From the NCBI GenBank assembly GCA_040285825.1, contig JAUPSS010000004.1, positions 1,240,001 through 1,304,000 on the forward strand: 64,000 bases of DNA, read 5' to 3'. The position numbers and the translations under genes were made by a program. Of the stretch, positions 3,131 to 43,930 are shown piece by piece (the first letter of the stretch is position 1; each line of letters opens with the position of its first letter). The DNA comes from Eukaryota sp. TZLM1-RC. Its lineage: Eukaryota > Protista > Metamonada: BaSk clade. The notes beneath the pieces were generated by a model, which worked only from the letters and a program-made list of their open reading frames with translations, was not told the DNA's origin and searched no databases.

Positions 3131-4439
3131 TTTTGTCTTTCACTTTAGATGTTTTCTCATGTTGTCGTTTGGATCTAGGATCTCCCGTACTCAGTTTTGC
3201 TTACATCTTGCACTTTGTTCCCCTTTGTTACAAAGTCTTCTCAATTTGATGTCTCCTGTTGATCTGATGGAATCCACTGATGGCTCACTTCTCTTTGGCA
3301 AATCTATCTCTTGCTCTCATTCATGACGCCTACTTGTTGTCAAGTCGCTCCTCTGCTTGAATTCTACTTCTACCTTTCAAAAATGTATGTTGTTCAAAAA
3401 TGTAGGCTGTTTTCTAACTGCTGTTCTGTGTTATAATGTGGATTGACAATTGTTGACTTATCTCTGTTTTTCTCTATTTTTTCACGACACTCAGAATTGA
3501 ACCCTGGACTAATGAAACAATTTATTTTTTATCGCGTTTAGTTTTGTTCTTTCAATTGAATTCTATTGAAGCTATTTGTAATATATTTTGTTTAATTGCT
3601 CAATCGAGCCAAGCAAGCGAAATACTAAGCTCAGTCCAATGATATTTAATGTAGAGTCTCTACCAAATATTGGGAGTAATTCTCTTTATTTTGAGTTTCT
3701 ATTAACAAATACATAAACGACTGAGTAATCATCAATCTTTGAGTTGCCAACTCTTTGAAGTTGAAAACAGTCATGATCGTTCTGATTACATGTATCTGTA
3801 TAGTTTATATGTTTTTGGATCTTTGTGAAGCTTCAATAAGTGTTTAACATTCTGTATCTGTTTTTCGCAGATGTTTCCTTTGATTCATGCAAGAATTTTT
3901 CAAAAATTAGCTTGAGTCTCAACAACAACACTTTATTTTATCTCATGTTTTTTTATTATTTTCAATTTTTTAATTTTTTTATTATATGTTTGCAACATCT
4001 GGACAACGACTTTTTTCTTGATTTTATGTTCTACATTCTATGAATTTGGTTTCAAATTTGTTTATTTTTTTATCTTTGCCTTGCTCTACTTTTTGATAAA
4101 CCGTTCTTCTATGGTCCTTTACAAAACATGGTTTAATTGTTCCATTTGTCCACCCTTTTCATTATTTATAATTTTATTTAGCATCTTCATTATTTATGCG
4201 TGACCAGCTTTCCCCTAGAAATAATCAATTGTGTTTAAATTGAATAACTGAATAGTTTTCTCACCAAGTGTTGATTTTGAGTCACATACCAGGATTAATT
4301 TCGTCACGTTTTATTTTATTTGTTTAAGATCTTCTGATTCACTTGGTTGTAATTTTTGCAAGTACTTCCTGTTCAGAGTTTGAATGTTTTTTCCCAAATC
4401 ATTCCATGGAAATATTCCTGAAAAGAATTTTTTAAATTT

Positions 4440-4506
4440 ATTATTTTTTATTAATTTTCTACGAAGGAACAAAAACAAAACAAACTAAAACACATAAGAA
4501 ACAAAT
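4440..4506 (-). mobile_element. Tiny 3' tail of RLE family ending SYVF
   Basis: Matches 57660-57720 and the reverse complement of 46055-46105. Confidence 0.7.
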
Positions 4507-5217
4507 TTATTATTTTATATTTTTAAATTATTATTTTGAATAATTTTTTCAACCAAATCTTTTTTGAACCAGCAACGATATTGAATCATCATTTGCATGT
4601 AACATTCCATAAAAAAACAAAAAATAATTGGACATGGTGGGCTAAGGACATTGAATCAGACACTAAATACTGAAGAAAGGCGATCAGGTGTCATGTTTGT
4701 ATGGTTGAATCTGATGCAAAAAAAATAAAGTTGAAAGTTTTGTACAATAGGGAGAATTTTAACTTTGTTTTTCAGAGCAGCAGTTTCAGGCAACTCTGCA
4801 GTTATTGTGCCCTAGTGTTTTGATGTGTGTTAGAGATTTTTAAACCTATCTATTGGGAAACAGTTGGGAAGTATAACAAAATAACCCTGGGTATCTTTTT
4901 CACTTTTCACAATTGTGTTGATACAAACTGCAATCAACAATAGTTTCATTGGATTTCCAGAACAATCTAGTCTTCTCAGAAACAGCTTTGTTTTGGTAGT
5001 CGTTTTGTATTATTATTTTATCTCATATGAGGCGCCCAGCAACATAACTTTGGGGGTGAAACATTCAGTAGAGTCAACAAAGAAGAGGGAGACAACGTAG
5101 AGCAGTATGCTATAATGGCTAAGAAAGCAATAGGAGGACCTGGACCATAAATAGGGAGGTTTTCAACAATCATGATGGAGAGCAATATACTTCGATACAA
5201 GGGGAAAAAGGGATAAA

Positions 5218-5298
5218 TGTTGCCTTAGGTTGCAAAAGTGGTTGAGATAAAGATAATTTATTTTTTATTCATATTATAAAAGCCTTAGGGCTCCAACA
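5218..5298 (-). repeat. Very short LTR (81 bp) of Gypsy family A
   Basis: TGTTG...CAACA termini, preceded on the minus strand by the polypurine tract gaaaaaggggaagaagcag. Homologues at 14350, 39968 and 41667. Confidence 0.75.
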
Positions 5299-5412
5299 CT
5301 GCTTCTTCCCCTTTTTCAAAGATAATAGGCTTATATAAATATGAATCTAAACTATAAATTAATAACTAAATAACTACAAATAATCTAAACTGATCTAAAC
5401 TAAGAATTAGCG

Positions 5413-7057
5413 TCACTTCCTAATTCTAGTACTGCGTCTAGGCCTCTTGCAAGGCGTAGAGTTATTGGAGGTACTTTTACGTTGACTAGTAGTACGTTTT
5501 CCAATTTTCTTGTTATTCCTACTGAACAACTTGTAAGCTTCTGAATGTTTAACTGAATGGAGAGGCTCTTCTGTTGTCTCACCGCCAAACCATTGAACAG
5601 TACAGAAACTACCTGAGTCAGAATTACATTCTGAGAGGATTTTCTCTATAACATGTTTCTCAGCATTGCCTGCTGCGACTGCCTTAAGAAATTCGATATC
5701 CTGGGGATTTTCAGCGTTATAGATTTTGCAATCCTTCTTAGCAGCCTTTAATTCGATGCCAGTGATAAGATTTTTTAATAATAAAGTAGAGTTGGAAGGT
5801 TGGTCTATTACTAAAAAGGGTCCATTCCAAGATCCATGCAATTTATTATTCTGTTTGGTTTTACGTAGGACATAGTCACCATTATTAAATACTATAGAAC
5901 GCGAATTAGTATTGTCTACTGAAATCGGAGTATTTAATGATTGATGACGCTCTGCTTCTTCCATTTTTTCTTGCAGACGAGTATTTTTCATTTTAATATC
6001 GTCTAATAAAGGTATATTGGAATCAAATTTTGATAAGTTTCCTAATATGTTTGCAGGGTCCGATCTTGGACTAATCGAAGATCCAAACATTAGTTCGTTA
6101 GGTTTAAAACCTGTCTTTCTGCTTTTAGTGGAATTTATTAATAGTTGGGATATGGGTACATAAGTAGACCAATTTCCATAATCATTAAAATCTATTAATA
6201 ATTTCCTCAAGCATTGTAGAACGTCTCTATGTTTTCGTTCTACGAGTCCATTACTTTCAGAGTAGTGGGGTATTGAGTTACTCATCTCAATAGCTAATAT
6301 ATTACACACTATTTTAAAAGTCTCATTGGCGAACTCAGGACCATTATCGCTATGAATTAACATACTCTGCCAAAAATTGCGCAAACGTTCCAAATCAAAG
6401 CGTCTGCGGTCTCTAAGGCATTGAGTTCCTTTAGAGGGACTAAAATTGAATATCCAGTAAAAGAATCTACAAATACTAATAAGTATTTATTACCATCACT
6501 ATCAGTATTCAGAGGTCCAATTGTGTCGACATTTAATCTAGCAAAAGGACGATCTGCCCAAAGGGAACCTGTGGAAGGTGTTTTTATTCTTTTAACTGGT
6601 GGCGTTTTTTGACAAGTTGGGCATCTTTTGATGTGGTTTATGAGGTCCTTTCTCATATTAGGCCAGAAAAAATCGCTTTTGGACAGTTTATGTAGACTGT
6701 CGTTTTTGCTGGGGTGGCCTGATTGAACCAATCCATGAATTAATAATAGTGCCTGTTTTCTGAGGCTTTTTGGAATTAAAATTTTATCTTTATTGTTTTT
6801 CCAAATTTGAGTATTTTCATGTAGAATTGCATTCTCAAATAGAGGGTCATTATTATTTTTGGCTATTTGTTGTTCAGATCTTATTTTAGAGAACCAAGAA
6901 GAAAAAATAGGTAAGTCCTGGTGTCTACTTAGGGATGCAATTGATGGGATGTCTTCGAAGTCCGAATCAGAATCTTCGTCTATAGGAGGTATCTCGTAAT
7001 TCGAAAGTAAAGTATCTGGTATATTTATACTACATATAGAATTAATGGAACGAGAAT
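5413..7057 (-). mobile_element. Ty3/Gypsy family A pol 3' part: integrase (HHCC, DDE, GPF) plus chromodomain-like tail, frameshifted
   Basis: GHP...FFWPNM...CPTCQ, VDTIGP, HSDNGPEF, NGLVER, WNGPF, VIEKIL...VQWFGGETTEEP. Confidence 0.9.
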
Positions 7058-35713: not shown

Positions 35714-36217
35714 TTAACAACAGTCTAAAGAATCCTCGGCAATTCTGCGCTGTCTACTCTTATACTTTTTAAAATTATCTCTAAACAAAACAGCCGCATC
35801 AACATTAGCTGGAGAATTGGGGTTGGGCTCAACCAAGACATTGACAATAGATATCAGGACACTCTCTATTGAATGGGCTGGAGACCACCTTTCATCTGGA
35901 TGTTCTCCTGAGAGTTCAATGTCCTGGGTGTCAGAAGCCGAATGGAGGATAGAGATGCACATCTTACCGTCGGGGTATACGTTAGGATGGTACATTGGGG
36001 TAAGAAACTTGAATTCGGGTGGAGAGTGGGGAAAGTCATCTGGGAAAGACATAATACCACGTAAAAGGCCACCTTCTAGCGGGCTGTTTTGTGGTCCGTA
36101 TATGGTAACAGCCCAACGGTAAATGTTATCACCATCTAACCCTATGTATATACCATTTATAGGCCTGGATTGGTAGTGGGAGAACTGTTTTTGAAGGTAT
36201 ATAAGGGATGGTTTCAT
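35714..36217 (-). CDS. Ubiquitin-conjugating enzyme E2, Ubc7/Cdc34 class
   Basis: HPNVYPDGKMCISILH with active-site Cys, acidic loop insertion, ERWSP, SPANVDAA. ATG at 36217 gives a typical E2 N-terminal helix. Confidence 0.93.
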   Translation of the reverse strand: MKPSLIYLQKQFSHYQSRPINGIYIGLDGDNIYRWAVTIYGPQNSPLEGGLLRGIMSFPDDFPHSPPEFKFLTPMYHPNVYPDGKMCISILHSASDTQDIELSGEHPDERWSPAHSIESVLISIVNVLVEPNPNSPANVDAAVLFRDNFKKYKSRQRRIAEDSLDCC

Positions 36218-36507
36218 TGATTGGATGATGGATACTGTGAATTTCACTTATCATGCATTCCCCTGTGAAATTCACTCCTGTTTTCAACTTTCTCAATGTC
36301 TACTCACAGGCTGTAAGAGACATGTAGCATCATTTGACAAAGACAATCATGATCTTCATCAATGGGCTACCTCACTTAAATACACCTACTGCATTCACAG
36401 AACAAAGCCTCGCGACTTGATGTATCTAAGTGGATCTACCAAATGCTACTAAGGTATTTGTAGATCGGTCTCAAAAGTTTTTGTTTCTGTATGCTCACGT
36501 TCCCTAT
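36218..36507 (-). ncRNA. Putative Fanzor omegaRNA (scaffold plus 3' guide)
   Basis: Five consecutive stem systems with G-U pairs that work only on the minus strand, plus a GNRA tetraloop, directly 3' of the Fanzor ORF. Confidence 0.7.
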
Positions 36508-38485
36508 TCATCTCCTCAGCAGAGCATCTGGGCAAATGTATCTTTCCGGCCACAATTCCGCTTTCTTCTTAATTTGAATATTTTTTTGCAGCGGAAATAT
36601 CTCTGTCATATACTATTTGACACTCAGTACAAATACGCATCTGCCATGAGCCTGCTTGAATATTCTCGGCCATGCAACAACTTGACATTTTGCTTGTATT
36701 AAATTCACTGGTTGACAAGTGCTTCACGTCCTTTTGATAACACAACCATTTTCTGAAAGCCCTTGCTGATCCATATCGATTGACTTTTCGGCAATGAGAA
36801 GGGAAATTAGCAGAACCCACAGCAAGATAGAGTTTTTCAGGATGTCCAGCCAGACTTTGAAATTTGTTGAGACTCTCTCTGAACCGTCTCTCTTTTCGTC
36901 TGCGGTTATCAAATTTAATTATTTTCCATTTCTGGCGATTACTTTCCAAATACACTTTCCTCCTGACCAAATTCCAATGGTTCAAATATTGGTTGAAATT
37001 TTGAACGGAATATTGGTTGGGAGAGTGTTTACTGGGTGAATTTTTTGTCATGTATCTTCTGCCAGTTGGACAAGGGATAACTCCACATTGATTATCATTT
37101 AAGAAGTAACCACATAATCTTGATTGGCCAAGATCAACGCCGATAAGGGGCCTTTCAGGTAAAATTTCGACTGGATGTCTACGTCTTCGACGGGGCATTT
37201 TTTTAGTACCCTTCAACTGTGTTTCTCTGGTTTTGTTGGCATTAGGGTCACTTTTCATTTCACTTTTTGATCTTCTTTTCTTTTTCGGTGGTTCATCCAG
37301 CTCATCTGTGTTTTCTGAGTCATTATTTTTACCTTCAAAGGTCAAAAGCAGTTCATTACCATTAGTTTTCAATAAAATTTTGTTAAATCTATTTTTCAAA
37401 CTTTTTCTGTTGATATTGAATTTTTGGTAAGGACATTGTTTGAATACTCGTTTCAGACATGTATTTTTGATGAACTTTGTTTTGGAAGATAATCCTTCAA
37501 TAAGTGGAAATTTTTTCACAGAGTGGAAAATTTGTGAAGGTACCTCAATAAATTTAGAACCTTTATGAGAAGCTAAAGGTATTATTCTAAATTTCTTCCA
37601 GCAATGCATATGAGAAAAGAAAGTGAGTAAGTATTGTGAAATTTTAAGATTGAAGAGAAAAAGCTCACTAATTTCCTTCGATGAAAAAGTGATTTTATCA
37701 TGTGAGGACAGTAGGGAGGCAGTGGTAGGAAATCTTTGAAAGAGATTCAAGATAAACCTACATGCATTCAATAAAAAAAATCTTTCTCTTGAATTATTCA
37801 AATTGAAATTGATGAGGTATTCAAGAACAGAATCAACTACTACTTCCTCGGGTTGGGCTAGTAGTTCATCTGGCAAAAGTGAAAGAATATTATTTGCAAA
37901 GACATTTGTTTTATTCAGGGCTCTACAATGAGCACGAATAAAGTTTTTTGTCCAGGATTGACAAATTTTGGGTAAACATGTCTTAACGTTGGAGGCCAAT
38001 TGACGAGCACGACAGGCAAGATAAGAAGAAAGCCCTTTTCTATTGATAAAATTACAGTTCTGGGACTGCAGCCAATCATTGAGGAAAAGATTGAATGAAT
38101 TTCTGTAAGGCACTAAAGAATTTTCCCACACAGAAACAAGAGACCTGTCTTGTGGGCATTCAGGAAGAAATCCATTGTAAAAGATATGGAGTAATTGGCG
38201 TTGGCCTTTAGATGTGGAAGGCTTTGGAAAAGAACCAGTGGTGATGACGGTCATAAACAGATACCATACATCCTGTTCCACTAAAGCTCTTGATGCCAAC
38301 GGAAAATTTAGAAGAAAAGATTGAAGTAATAAAGACGCTTCATGACAAATCTCGGTGACCACAGGAAGGTCAGTCCGAATTTGTTGCACCGCTGCAGGGG
38401 TCAGCAGCGAGTTAAGTGCACAAGACCGAGTGAATACACGTGATACAGAGGGGTGTCTGACATGTAGTGAGAATAAAGAGCTCAT
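36508..38485 (-). CDS. Fanzor1 (TnpB-like RNA-guided RuvC endonuclease); one extra A in an A7 run near the 3' end
   Basis: RuvC-I GVDLG, RuvC-II SEFNTSK, CC...CTEC zinc finger, RuvC-III DRDISAA. The ORF track ends at 36569. Removing one A gives AAKNI...CPDALLRR* ending at 36508. Confidence 0.9.
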
Positions 38486-38718
38486 CTATCAAATTTTACA
38501 CTTGTCACCCATTTTCGACTTCTGGTTGCCTATTCTGGGAGGTTTTTAACCCTTAACTTGGTTTTGGGAGGTTTTCACTATTCCCACACTTTCCCACACT
38601 TTCCATTTACTTTGTAAGAATTCTCCAACTGAGTAGTTCAGCATCTCAGTTCATTTTATCCACGTCCTCCATTAATCTCAACAGGTTACCACTGTTTGAC
38701 GTTTTGTGTTATTAGCCG

Positions 38719-39129
38719 ATGTCTAAACTCAATTCTTTACAAACCAAGGTGATTCAGCTTAAACACACAATCACTACTTATCAAAACTACTGCAAATCAC
38801 ATAATCTTCCTCTTCCACAAGTAAGTGATGTATTTTTCGCTCCAGACACACTCCAGAAGGTTTCAAATGCGTTCTCGCTTCGTTCTGATCTCAATGACCT
38901 TCGCCATGATATCAATGCAGAACTTACCTCAATTGAATCTCAACTACAGTCCTCTCTTTCCCTTGCTCTGTCGTCTCTACACTCTCATGATGCGCACATA
39001 TCACAACTTAACCAAGAAATGAGCAGTGTTCAATCACTAAACCAGCAACTTGAGTGTGAAGTATCTAAATTAAATGAAACTACTCAATCTCAGAGTCTGC
39101 AGCTTTCCGAACTTGAAAATGATGGATAA
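38719..39129 (+). CDS. Coiled-coil protein, probably 3'-truncated
   Basis: Heptad-rich 136-aa ORF divergent from the Fanzor and abutting an RLE fragment. Confidence 0.5.
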   Translation: MSKLNSLQTKVIQLKHTITTYQNYCKSHNLPLPQVSDVFFAPDTLQKVSNAFSLRSDLNDLRHDINAELTSIESQLQSSLSLALSSLHSHDAHISQLNQEMSSVQSLNQQLECEVSKLNETTQSQSLQLSELENDG

Positions 39130-39219
39130 TAATCCCTCAAATTCAATTAATTCAAATAGACTTAGAATTTGATAAGATTCCAATTGTTTCAAACAAAATT
39201 GTAAAAGACCAAAAATCAC

Positions 39220-42049: not shown

Positions 42050-43930
42050 GTAAAATTTTTGAGAAGTTTTTTATGGCGTTCACGGATTCAATTTGCTATT
42101 ATTAAAAGATTACCTCGGTTTTTTAATCGAATAAGAGAAGCTTTAGCTAGACAGCAAGCAGATAAAGATTTTGTAGAAGAAATCTTGGTTCAATGATAGT
42201 CGTCCCATTAGTTATGAGTTAATTTAATTAAGTGTGTAAATTCAATAAATATTCTTTGTGCTTTGTTACAATAAAAATGCAAAAGGAAAAACTTCTGATC
42301 GCTGCTTGAAATGCCGCATAGTTTATAACTACCATCCTCCCATAAGAATACCTCAAGCAATATATGCCGGAATTAATACCGTATTTTCAAACAACATGCA
42401 ACACAAATTCTAATTTGCATTTTGGTTATTCCATTTTGAGTTCATCAAGTGGTGTAAAGTAAGGGGATCTGTTAGGACCTCCTTTGTTTTGTTTGGCCAA
42501 TCATCCTATTTTATTGCAAATTCAAGAGATGGTTCTTCGCTGAAAATGATTGAATATATGGACAATGTGGTTTTTATAGATGATTAAAATATTGTGAAAC
42601 AAGCAACTGTATGTTTTAAAAAATTATTATCCAAAATTGGTCTCCGACTTAATTTACTTAAATGTGTTTTGTTATCGAATTCTCCAATATCCACAGTTTC
42701 TTCAGCGCTATTTGCTACAGATGTACTATTTCGCCAAAATGAATCCAATGTTTGCATGTGATTGGATTCAAGTAATGCAATCAATTCAATCAGTCGTTGC
42801 AGTATTAATGGTGCTTTGTTGCAATATTTGCCAGAATTAATGACTTATTTTTAATCAACTTATAGCATAAATTCCAGTTTGTATTTTGCTAATTCCATTG
42901 TAAATTCATCAAGTGGTGTAAAGCAAGGAGATCCGTTAGGACCTCTTTTGTTTTGTTTGGCCATTCATCCTATTTTATTGCAAATTCAAGAGATGTTTCC
43001 TTCGCTAAAAATGATTGCGTATATGGATGATGTTTTTCTTATTGGTGATTTAAATATTGTGAAAGAAGCAACGTTTGATGGTATTGAAATTGAAGACAAA
43101 TTATATTCAATTGATGCTATTCGTCATTTGGGTTCGTTTTTAGGAAATAATGATGAAATTACCAAAAAATTGTTTGAAAAGTTGAACTCAATTTCTGGCA
43201 AAATTGACCGAATGATGAATTTAGATATACAAAAACACATCCAATTTACCATTATAAGACTGTGTTTTAGTTCCAATTTTAATCATATATTTCGATCTAC
43301 AAATCCTCTCGTCACTAGACCTTTGGCTCAAAAGGTCAATGAGTTACGTGCAAAAGTTCTGTGTCAATTACTGGGATGTAAAATGTTTCAAATTCCAGAC
43401 CATGCTTACCTTAGTCCACATTATGGTGGTTTAGGGTGGACGAAGGCTTCTATTCTTACTTCATGTGCTTTTATTTGTGGATGTAGAAATGCAATTTTTG
43501 AGTTTTCTGAAAGATTTGCTGATTGAAAAGATTTATTAATGACAACACAAAGTTCCACAGCTTTTGCATTAAATGAAGAATTGTCAAAAATTGATGGAGA
43601 TAAATTTGTGAATTTGTAAATTTGAGAGTCATTGAACCCAACATGAATTCTCATAAATGAAACGTAACTACATACCAACCATGTAACAATAACATTTTGT
43701 GTGTAGTTACGTGGAAAATAAATTGTATTCAAATTGGAAAAAAATTGTTTCAAATAATATTTTATATATTTATTGAACTTGCACACTTAATTAAATTAAC
43801 TCATAACTAATGGGACGACTATCATTGAACCAAGATTTCCTCTACAAAATTTTGATCTGCTTGCTGTCTAGCTAAAGCTTCTCTTATTCAATTGAAAAAT
43901 CCAGATAATCTATTAACAATGGCGAAATGA
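42050..43930. mobile_element. Scrambled pieces of the EILVQ-family CRE-like retrotransposon, including the RT core
   Basis: GVKQGDPLGPLLF and AYMDD in ORF 42879-43526. 3' tails at 42050-42250 (+) and 43760-43930 (-). Confidence 0.85.

Follow-up and report, generated by a model that had tools for sequence, protein, structure and literature searches.

Fanzors are eukaryotic RNA-guided nucleases and are relevant to genome editing and to the spread of TnpB into eukaryotes. They carry Gly or Pro at the position of the canonical RuvC-II Glu, with an alternative Glu about 45 residues further on (Jiang et al. 2023, PMC10530073), and their published fingerprint combines DPG at RuvC-I with a Glu that precedes the first CxxC by six residues (Yoon et al. 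2023, PMC10711439); the segment from RuvC-I to the alternative Glu measures 120–160 residues (PMC10711439). Fanzor1 is marked by a REC2 made up of two kinked helices, by insertions in WED that include a TDG motif, and by residence in eukaryotic transposons with terminal inverted repeats (TIRs) and target-site duplications (TSDs); the Fanzor1 profile-match threshold in Yoon et al. was E 1e-10 (PMC10711439). The 2023 Fanzor surveys are older than the genomes considered here, and no report of Fanzors in Metamonada was found in the searchable literature. We analysed a stretch of 64,000 nucleotides (the window) from the metamonad Eukaryota sp. TZLM1-RC (contig JAUPSS010000004.1, positions 1,240,001 to 1,304,000), in which a first-pass annotation had described a near-intact, stand-alone Fanzor1 gene. 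We consider it probable that window positions 36233-38595 (36233-39123 in the sub-lineage of this copy) represent one copy of a mobile, non-autonomous repeat confined to metamonads of the Skoliomonas type, that the repeat encodes a highly divergent Fanzor-type RuvC nuclease of the TnpB superfamily, and that this copy has probably been disabled by an inherited extra A. The strains concerned are TZLM1-RC, GEM-RC1 and TZLM3-RCL, which correspond to Skoliomonas litria, Skoliomonas sp. GEMRC and Skoliomonas sp. RCL, the names under which they are treated in PMC11316075; the code TZLM1-RC is absent from the text of that paper.

The open reading frame (ORF) of the putative nuclease is uninterrupted over all 638 amino acids and holds the three RuvC motifs that the first-pass annotation had read from it, GVDLG, SEFNTSK and DRDISAA, with D451, E594 and D629 at the catalytic positions (Table 1). 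E594 stands 142 residues after D451, with 140 residues between the DLG motif and E594, and 37 residues past G557, which was assigned to the canonical RuvC-II site from its position and predicted secondary structure only. Of the zinc finger that had been claimed, the cluster of cysteines is there, but its layout is CC-x14-CxxC, without the first CxxC of a CxxC...CxxC pair. The Cys-cluster region aligns with the zinc ribbon of UnCas12m4a and LaTranC, and the RDISAA motif aligns with RD.NAA.NI of TnpB and Cas12 profiles. Little or no variation is seen at D451, G557, the Glu of ExNTSK, the four Cys and R628/D629 across subfamilies with 22-40% identity to the window protein. The basic linker upstream of RuvC-I, the position of which is kept in all subfamilies, is a candidate nuclear localization signal (NLS).

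Known profiles match only the last ~60-90 residues of the family proteins. Pfam PF07282 (Cas12f1-like TNB) matches 11 of 12 family members, with P0002 (28.6 bits), P0017 (28.5 bits), P0019 (32.6 bits) and P0031 (28.1 bits) above the curated cut-off of 26.3 bits; the window ORF scores under it (E 1e-4, 22.8 bits) because its end is missing. Matches were also obtained to the NCBIfam models guided_TnpB (1.2e-6), IS200_TnpB (4e-4) and IS607_TnpB (1e-3), at scores of 15-28 bits that are far below the family cut-offs of 100-350; for IS607_TnpB the match reached 13-18 bits against a cut-off of 350. When the family profile was searched against the sequences in the PDB, it found UnCas12m4a (1.9e-4), LaTranC (2e-3), a chain named 'Transposase' (9j09, 1e-2) and one AI-designed RNA-guided nuclease, and every one of these matches covered NTSK...C..C...RD.(N/S)AA.NI. 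A phmmer search of the PDB with the single ORF returned only UnCas12m4a, at E 0.79. Look-alikes in the ESM-Atlas, which we treat as a lead only, comprised clusters from giant viruses, fungi and green algae that carry PF07282 and DUF8286 (score 0.97 for a paralog, 0.95 for residues 1-445 alone). Judged from sequence, the family is a member of the TnpB/Cas12 superfamily by way of its C-terminal domain. The earlier call of a eukaryotic, Fanzor-type gene of the TnpB superfamily is supported; the gene has a conserved D...E(alt)...D arrangement and a Cys cluster, and its 3' tail, which is conserved and structured, extends to the element boundary. We file the family as Fanzor-type, that is, as a putative alternative-Glu TnpB lineage in a eukaryote.

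The window ORF is closest to proteins annotated as hypothetical in Eukaryota sp. TZLM1-RC (77-97% identity) and GEM-RC1 (55%). A HMMER (phmmer) pass over 1.84 billion representative proteins gave 28 matches at E up to 1e-3; the distant matches that were traced (six clusters) all came from TZLM3-RCL or GEM-RC1, and the close matches that could be named came from TZLM1-RC. The same family set, with nothing outside the three strains, was returned by a profile search of 8000 word-sharing candidates. A word-index search with the C-terminal 118 residues of P0019 found, at E up to 10, nothing but family members, and the family alignment, run against the viral contigs of IMG/VR, picked up no relative. 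Family proteins are 592-659 residues long. In TZLM3-RCL they form several subfamilies, and the gene models there include eight of 592 residues and three of 605 residues, which are intact relatives; their repetition suggests recent activity in that genome. Bacterial contamination was rejected as a source of the family, the copies being located in megabase eukaryotic contigs beside E2, WD40, RhoGAP and RtcB genes.

The gene had been described as standing alone among host genes, but it lies in a repeat with at least eight copies, and its 5' neighbour is part of the duplicated unit. Eight copies were read in TZLM1-RC, the one in the window and seven others (L001-L004 and L006-L008), and 28 gene-model fragments of the family are found on contigs of 8 different sizes. 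Comparison of the copies read gave a fixed right end and a variable 5' side. In blastn comparisons with the seven other copies the core repeat was 86-99% identical, started always at 38595 and ended at 36233 (+/-3) in the copies that keep the end. Seven of the eight copies retain the 3' end, with a shared end base and differing flanks, and L004 is 3'-truncated. The right end reads ...GTGAAATTCACAGTA in the copies except L004 (in L003 with three substitutions), and the GEM-RC1 copy has the same right end as those of TZLM1-RC. Over 39123..36233, L006 and L007 are 99.3% and 99.0% identical to the window, and the flanks diverge past both ends of this extended unit. The 5' side is not fixed: L001, L002/L008, L003/L004 and L006/L007/window each run 48-680 bp upstream with different sequence, and no common 5' terminus was found among the copies. 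A LINE-like (long interspersed nuclear element-like) retrotransposition, which would give a fixed 3' end and variable 5' extents, was rejected because the copies are 5'-extended, not truncated, and carry no poly(A). Helitron-like (TC...CTRR) and Tc1/mariner-like (TA|CAGT) ends do not fit either.

At 8 of the 12 loci the right end is 0 to ~90 nt upstream of the ATG of a host gene on the same strand, and the genes downstream of these eight right ends are E2, RhoGAP, an unnamed 664-aa gene, RCC1, TsaD, WD40, PDCD2_C and RtcB. In L011 the ATG follows immediately after the last element base. This suggests that the element strongly prefers host-gene leaders for insertion or retention, or that it supplies a host promoter.

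None of the eight TZLM1-RC copies is fully open, the longest annotated family protein in this genome is at most 584 residues long, and the window copy is the best preserved of those seen. In L001 423 bp are deleted in frame; in L002 the frame is broken near the ORF midpoint (leaving ORFs of 299 and 377 aa) and again at the A-run corresponding to 37204; L003 and L004 carry many frameshifts, and L006 and L007 several one-base indels; L008 is split by a 2.7-kb insert (L008 4865-7575) with a 762-aa RVT_1 (reverse transcriptase) gene. The ratio of non-synonymous to synonymous substitution rates (dN/dS) of the window copy against L001 or L002 was 0.23-0.25, with 24 non-synonymous and 25 synonymous changes over 629 codons in the comparison with L002. 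These values indicate that the lineages leading to the copies were under protein-level constraint until recently.

The 3' non-coding tail of the element is 65.7% identical to that of the GEM-RC1 copy, against 66.1% for the adjacent coding sequence and 59% for the 5' half of the coding sequence, and it holds long, nearly invariant blocks. Its minimum free energy is -77.1 kcal/mol (z -3.3). Of the 89 pairs in the consensus fold, 6 show compensatory double changes, all of which come from the single GEM-RC1 sequence. A profile of the tail, searched with nhmmer, found all eight TZLM1-RC copies and the GEM-RC1 copy; the window gave no additional tail, and the TZLM3-RCL loci gave no match. Rfam had no match at E up to 1 in 35900-39200. 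By eye, only a short shared motif, TTTTG.GACCGATC, could be recognized shortly downstream of the stop codon in L010 and L011. The analogy with TnpB and Fanzor systems makes the tail a candidate omega/fRNA guide scaffold and/or right transposon end, and the adjoining flank (36213..36232) would be the guide-equivalent sequence.

Several observations weigh against the reading of the locus as a mobile, Fanzor-type nuclease disabled by an inherited frameshift. Residues 1-570, which include the N-terminus in which the first-pass annotation had read a Fanzor1 pattern, have no profile or sequence similarity outside the family, the solved Fanzor chains are absent from the PDB matches even at E 10, and neither of the two published Fanzor regular expressions matches. 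AlphaFold2 models, by which a RuvC fold might have been recognized, were unusable both for the whole ORF with 12 relatives (mean predicted local distance difference test score, pLDDT, 39.3) and for residues 296-638 with 37 sequences (pLDDT 34.9). The conserved tail could be a transposon end or the promoter of the downstream gene in place of a guide scaffold. Relative to the window, L006 and L007 (both 3340-6237) have 7 and 11 indels, almost all of a single base in a homopolymer, as against 12 and 17 substitutions; such a ratio in near-identical repeats points to uncorrected homopolymer errors in the assembly, and the A7 run could be one of them.

A rival reading is that of a family that is no longer an RNA-guided nuclease, having been exapted or surviving as a purely selfish remnant, with the tail serving as a transposon end or as the promoter or 5' untranslated region of the downstream host gene. 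The position of the right end just before host start codons would suit a promoter or leader. We regard this as very improbable, since the three catalytic positions and the Cys cluster are kept across the divergent subfamilies, dN/dS is well below 1, and the tail folds better than its shuffles and has some compensatory pairs. A divergent, Fanzor-type nuclease encoded in the repeat is what we continue to favour.

Whether the family is a true, fast-evolving member of the Fanzor1 clade was weighed separately. The window protein and all TZLM1-RC and GEM-RC1 copies have DLG at RuvC-I; among the TZLM3-RCL relatives two subfamilies have DPG and two have DPN, so that DPG is seen only at the level of the family. 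The conserved Glu sits 8 residues before 'CC', not 6 before CxxC, and a relaxed Fanzor pattern fits the window ORF and 6 of 9 relatives tested. In favour of Fanzor1 are the length of ~590-660 residues, the large and helical N-terminal half, a (T/S)(N/D)G motif (KTNG in the window protein) in a predicted beta-hairpin before the basic linker, which recalls the Fanzor1 WED 'TDG', two long helices predicted between RuvC-I and the Gly position (494-514 and 527-545, from a low-confidence model), and the presence of Mucoromycota in the look-alike clusters. Set against these, neither the phmmer search of the representative proteins nor the profile search of word-sharing candidates recovered a Fanzor1 sequence, and the weak NCBIfam matches lean to IS607-type TnpB. 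The TIRs and TSDs of a eukaryotic DNA transposon were also not seen: no TIRs were present in the well-defined TZLM3-RCL element and no TSDs were visible in 8 copies, and the element ends are asymmetric and the 5' extents variable; with only a few copies read, weak TIRs might escape. The Fanzor1 subtype given by the first-pass annotation is therefore not borne out, because the sequence link to known Fanzors is limited to the C-terminal TNB/RuvC-III stretch and the fingerprint fails, and we hold membership of the Fanzor1 clade to be doubtful.

A separate, so far unrecognized Fanzor-type clade, neither Fanzor1 nor Fanzor2, is a more speculative possibility and one that we consider distinctly improbable. 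It would be characterized by the CC...CxxC metal site, an internal NLS, and copying with a fixed right end and variable 5' extents that drag host sequence along, with the element settling before host start codons so that the guide would be the host leader; this may reflect nuclease-driven (homing-like) copying. No IS607 serine-recombinase TnpA was found among the called genes of the 12 loci.

The frameshift of the window copy is located at the A7 run noted by the first-pass annotation, and the next frame restores the expected C-terminus as had been stated. When shifted by one base, 36508-36582 translates to NIQIKKKAELWPERYICPDALLRR*, which is exactly what the paralogs with A6 give and is identical to the tail of P0002. 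The shift replaces the last 24 conserved residues with 4. With the TZLM3-RCL relative P0017 the displaced 24-residue tail shares 57% identity, as against just 31-34% for the proteins overall, and the truncation begins seven residues past the catalytic Asp. Loss of function is likely because the lost tail is more conserved than the rest of the protein and the break is so close to the catalytic residue, and the suggestion that the gene might be active is not supported. The window copy is most likely inactive or crippled, as read from its sequence, and very recently disabled.

The first-pass annotation had suggested that the frameshift was perhaps a homopolymer sequencing error, in which case the locus would encode a protein of 658 residues, possibly active. 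The TZLM1-RC assembly was made from Nanopore R9.4 reads with Illumina correction, and the genomes of the other two strains were likewise built from Nanopore reads with Illumina correction (PMC11316075). The near-identical copies differ mostly in single-base homopolymer lengths, these differences are most likely residual Nanopore error in repeats that short reads could not polish, and frameshifts in repeats of this assembly are accordingly untrustworthy without reads. The displaced frame has no further decay, which also suits an error. We checked the run in the public sequencing runs as Logan contigs, which are collapsed over the copies. Every Logan contig across the run shows A6, but these contigs carry single-nucleotide polymorphisms of other copies and, being collapsed, say nothing on the window locus. 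One contig identical to the window (depth 3.5) stops after exactly six run bases, as expected at an A6/A7 branch, which is weak evidence for a real A7. The distribution of the run is the one that inheritance would give: A7 is present in exactly the window, L006 and L007, which form one 99%-identical sub-lineage, and A6 in the four other copies (L001, L002, L003 and L008), with identical local context. This confinement argues that A7 was probably inherited. Unique flanking sequence is, moreover, ~350 bp away from the run, a distance at which polishing with read pairs would be expected to succeed. We therefore regard a real, inherited frameshift as quite likely and an intact window copy as unlikely; the family is real and interesting, and the copy in the window is probably dead.

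By analogy with TnpB and Fanzor, RNA guidance and nuclease activity of the family may be expected. The 3' tail would be transcribed into the guide-RNA scaffold, with the guide itself supplied by the neighbouring flank, which for this copy is the E2 leader. Target sites free of the element would be cut by the nuclease, which would in this way promote retention or copying of the element, and mobility would be supplied by an enzyme encoded elsewhere. If active, the family would widen the sequence space of Fanzors, having another layout of the metal site, another position of the alternative Glu and an RNA tail of ~275 nt. It would also offer a natural system, with intact copies in TZLM3-RCL against decaying ones in TZLM1-RC, in which the role that such nucleases play for their elements could be studied. 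As the window copy is probably dead, its practical use is chiefly as a template for a family consensus.

Table 1 Positions of the element, its coding motifs and its surroundings (window coordinates unless a locus is named)
Feature	Position	Strand	Remarks
TnpB/Fanzor-like nuclease ORF	36569..38485	-	638 aa, intronless, early stop
RuvC-I Asp D451 in GVDLG	37133-37135	-	Invariant across 12 family members, 22-96% identity
G557 in LAVGSANF	36815-36817	-	Invariant; canonical TnpB RuvC-II Glu position (assigned)
Alternative RuvC-II Glu E594 in SEFNTSK	36704-36706	-	(D/S)E(F/Y)NTSK kept across subfamilies
Cys cluster C603, C604 ... C619, C622	36620-36679	-	Nearly invariant; non-canonical zinc-ribbon/TNB region
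RuvC-III Asp D629 in DRDISAA	36599-36601	-	R628, D629, S631, A632 nearly invariant
Basic linker PPKKKRRSK ... PRRRRRH	37175-37291	-	Between WED-like strands and RuvC-I
A7 run	36581-36587	-	+1 frameshift relative to A6 copies
Displaced frame	36508..36582	-	Conserved C-terminal 24 residues and the family's normal stop
Structured 3' non-coding tail	36233..36507	-	275 nt, family stop to right end
Terminal hairpin	36237..36275	-	11-nt arms GTGAATTTCAC / GTGAAATTCAC, four bases before element end
Flank past right end	36213..36232	-	E2 leader with ATG at 36215-36217; flanks of all copies differ here
Core repeat	36233..38595	-	2363 bp; common to all copies of the family in this genome
Extended unit	36233..39123	-	2891 bp; common only to window, L006 and L007
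Coiled-coil ORF, truncated	38719..39129	+	136 aa; identical to N-terminus of 295-aa L007 ORF
Right end near host ATG	window 36215-36233; L003 8293-8331; L004 8063-8071; L006 6237; L008 8738-8814; L009 4980-5065; L010 4885-4890; L011 4885-4886		

As for the neighbouring genes, the E2 gene on the 3' side, recognized in the earlier annotation, is a genuine unique neighbour (UQ_con, E 3e-39). The supposed coiled-coil neighbour proved to be a truncated fragment; its similarity to L006 and L007 ends at 39123, and it is co-duplicated with the element as a part of the unit. L002 and L008 share an upstream MJ1316-domain gene fragment. No DNA transposase was present among ORFs of at least 120 aa in 31-45.5 kb, in line with the earlier annotation, and only an RVT_1 fragment was found there; nor were transposase genes found within ~5-7 kb on either side of the element. 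Parts of the RVT_1 insert of L008 match window 42052-43605.

On the 5' side, window 38486-38620 includes a conserved 110 bp upstream of the ATG with two AAAACCTCCCA(A/G)AA repeats. The junction at 38595 has a duplicated AAAGTGTGGG; the other copies run on into CTAGTTTATGAAGTGAG, which indicates that the 5' end was rearranged in the window sub-lineage. An isolated, inverted 94-bp fragment of the element 5' region (window 38453-38545, around the start codon; 84% identity) is located at L002 12703-12792. In TZLM3-RCL, the element of the 592-aa subfamily measures 2613 bp (L010 2273-4885 against L011 2273-4885, 97.8% identity), with 728 bp before the ATG and just 106 bp past the stop, and ends in ...GAAAAACACAGA; shortly past its stop it carries TTTTGGACCGATC, which resembles TTTTGAGACCGATC of the window tail. 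Directly upstream of another TZLM3-RCL copy, L009 923-2947 (P0038) is annotated as an XPG-family nuclease whose end aligns with the Fanzor-like N-terminus, and this gene model probably fuses an XPG gene with the start of the element ORF.

Compared with known systems, the family shares with UnCas12m4a and LaTranC the zinc-ribbon/RuvC-III stretch NTSK ... C..C ... RD.(N/S)AA.NI; only ~55 residues align, those proteins are prokaryotic CRISPR systems or transposon-CRISPR intermediates, and the likeness implies no specific relationship. The Fanzor1 protein SpuFz1 (PDB 8GKH) is similar in length, in its large helical N-terminal half and, as a lead only, in the TDG-like motif of a WED-like hairpin, but the family profile does not match its solved chain at E up to 10 and the family lacks a host transposon of the TIR/TSD type. 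Fanzor2 (ApmFz2) and the IS607-type TnpB 'pro-Fanzors' resemble the family in their asymmetric ends without TIRs and in the weak matches to IS607_TnpB and guided_TnpB, and the ApmFz2 omegaRNA of 247 nt (PMC11832414) is similar in size, ~250 nt, to the tail. The family proteins are, in contrast, ~100-250 residues longer, and no serine-recombinase TnpA was seen near the 12 loci. The family differs from Fanzors in general by DLG in the window protein and DPN in two subfamilies, by a Glu 8 residues before 'CC' in place of 6 before CxxC, by an NLS-like segment that is internal and not N-terminal, and by the lack of detectable similarity outside its last 60-90 residues. It is like them in its eukaryotic nuclear genome, in the Gly at canonical RuvC-II and the alternative Glu just upstream of the Cys cluster, in the 140-residue segment from RuvC-I to this Glu, which falls inside the published 120-160, in the DPG of the TZLM3-RCL relatives and in a basic NLS-like segment. 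As in Fanzor elements, the copies are multiple, no transposase is encoded in the element, and a structured, conserved 3' non-coding region reaches the element boundary.

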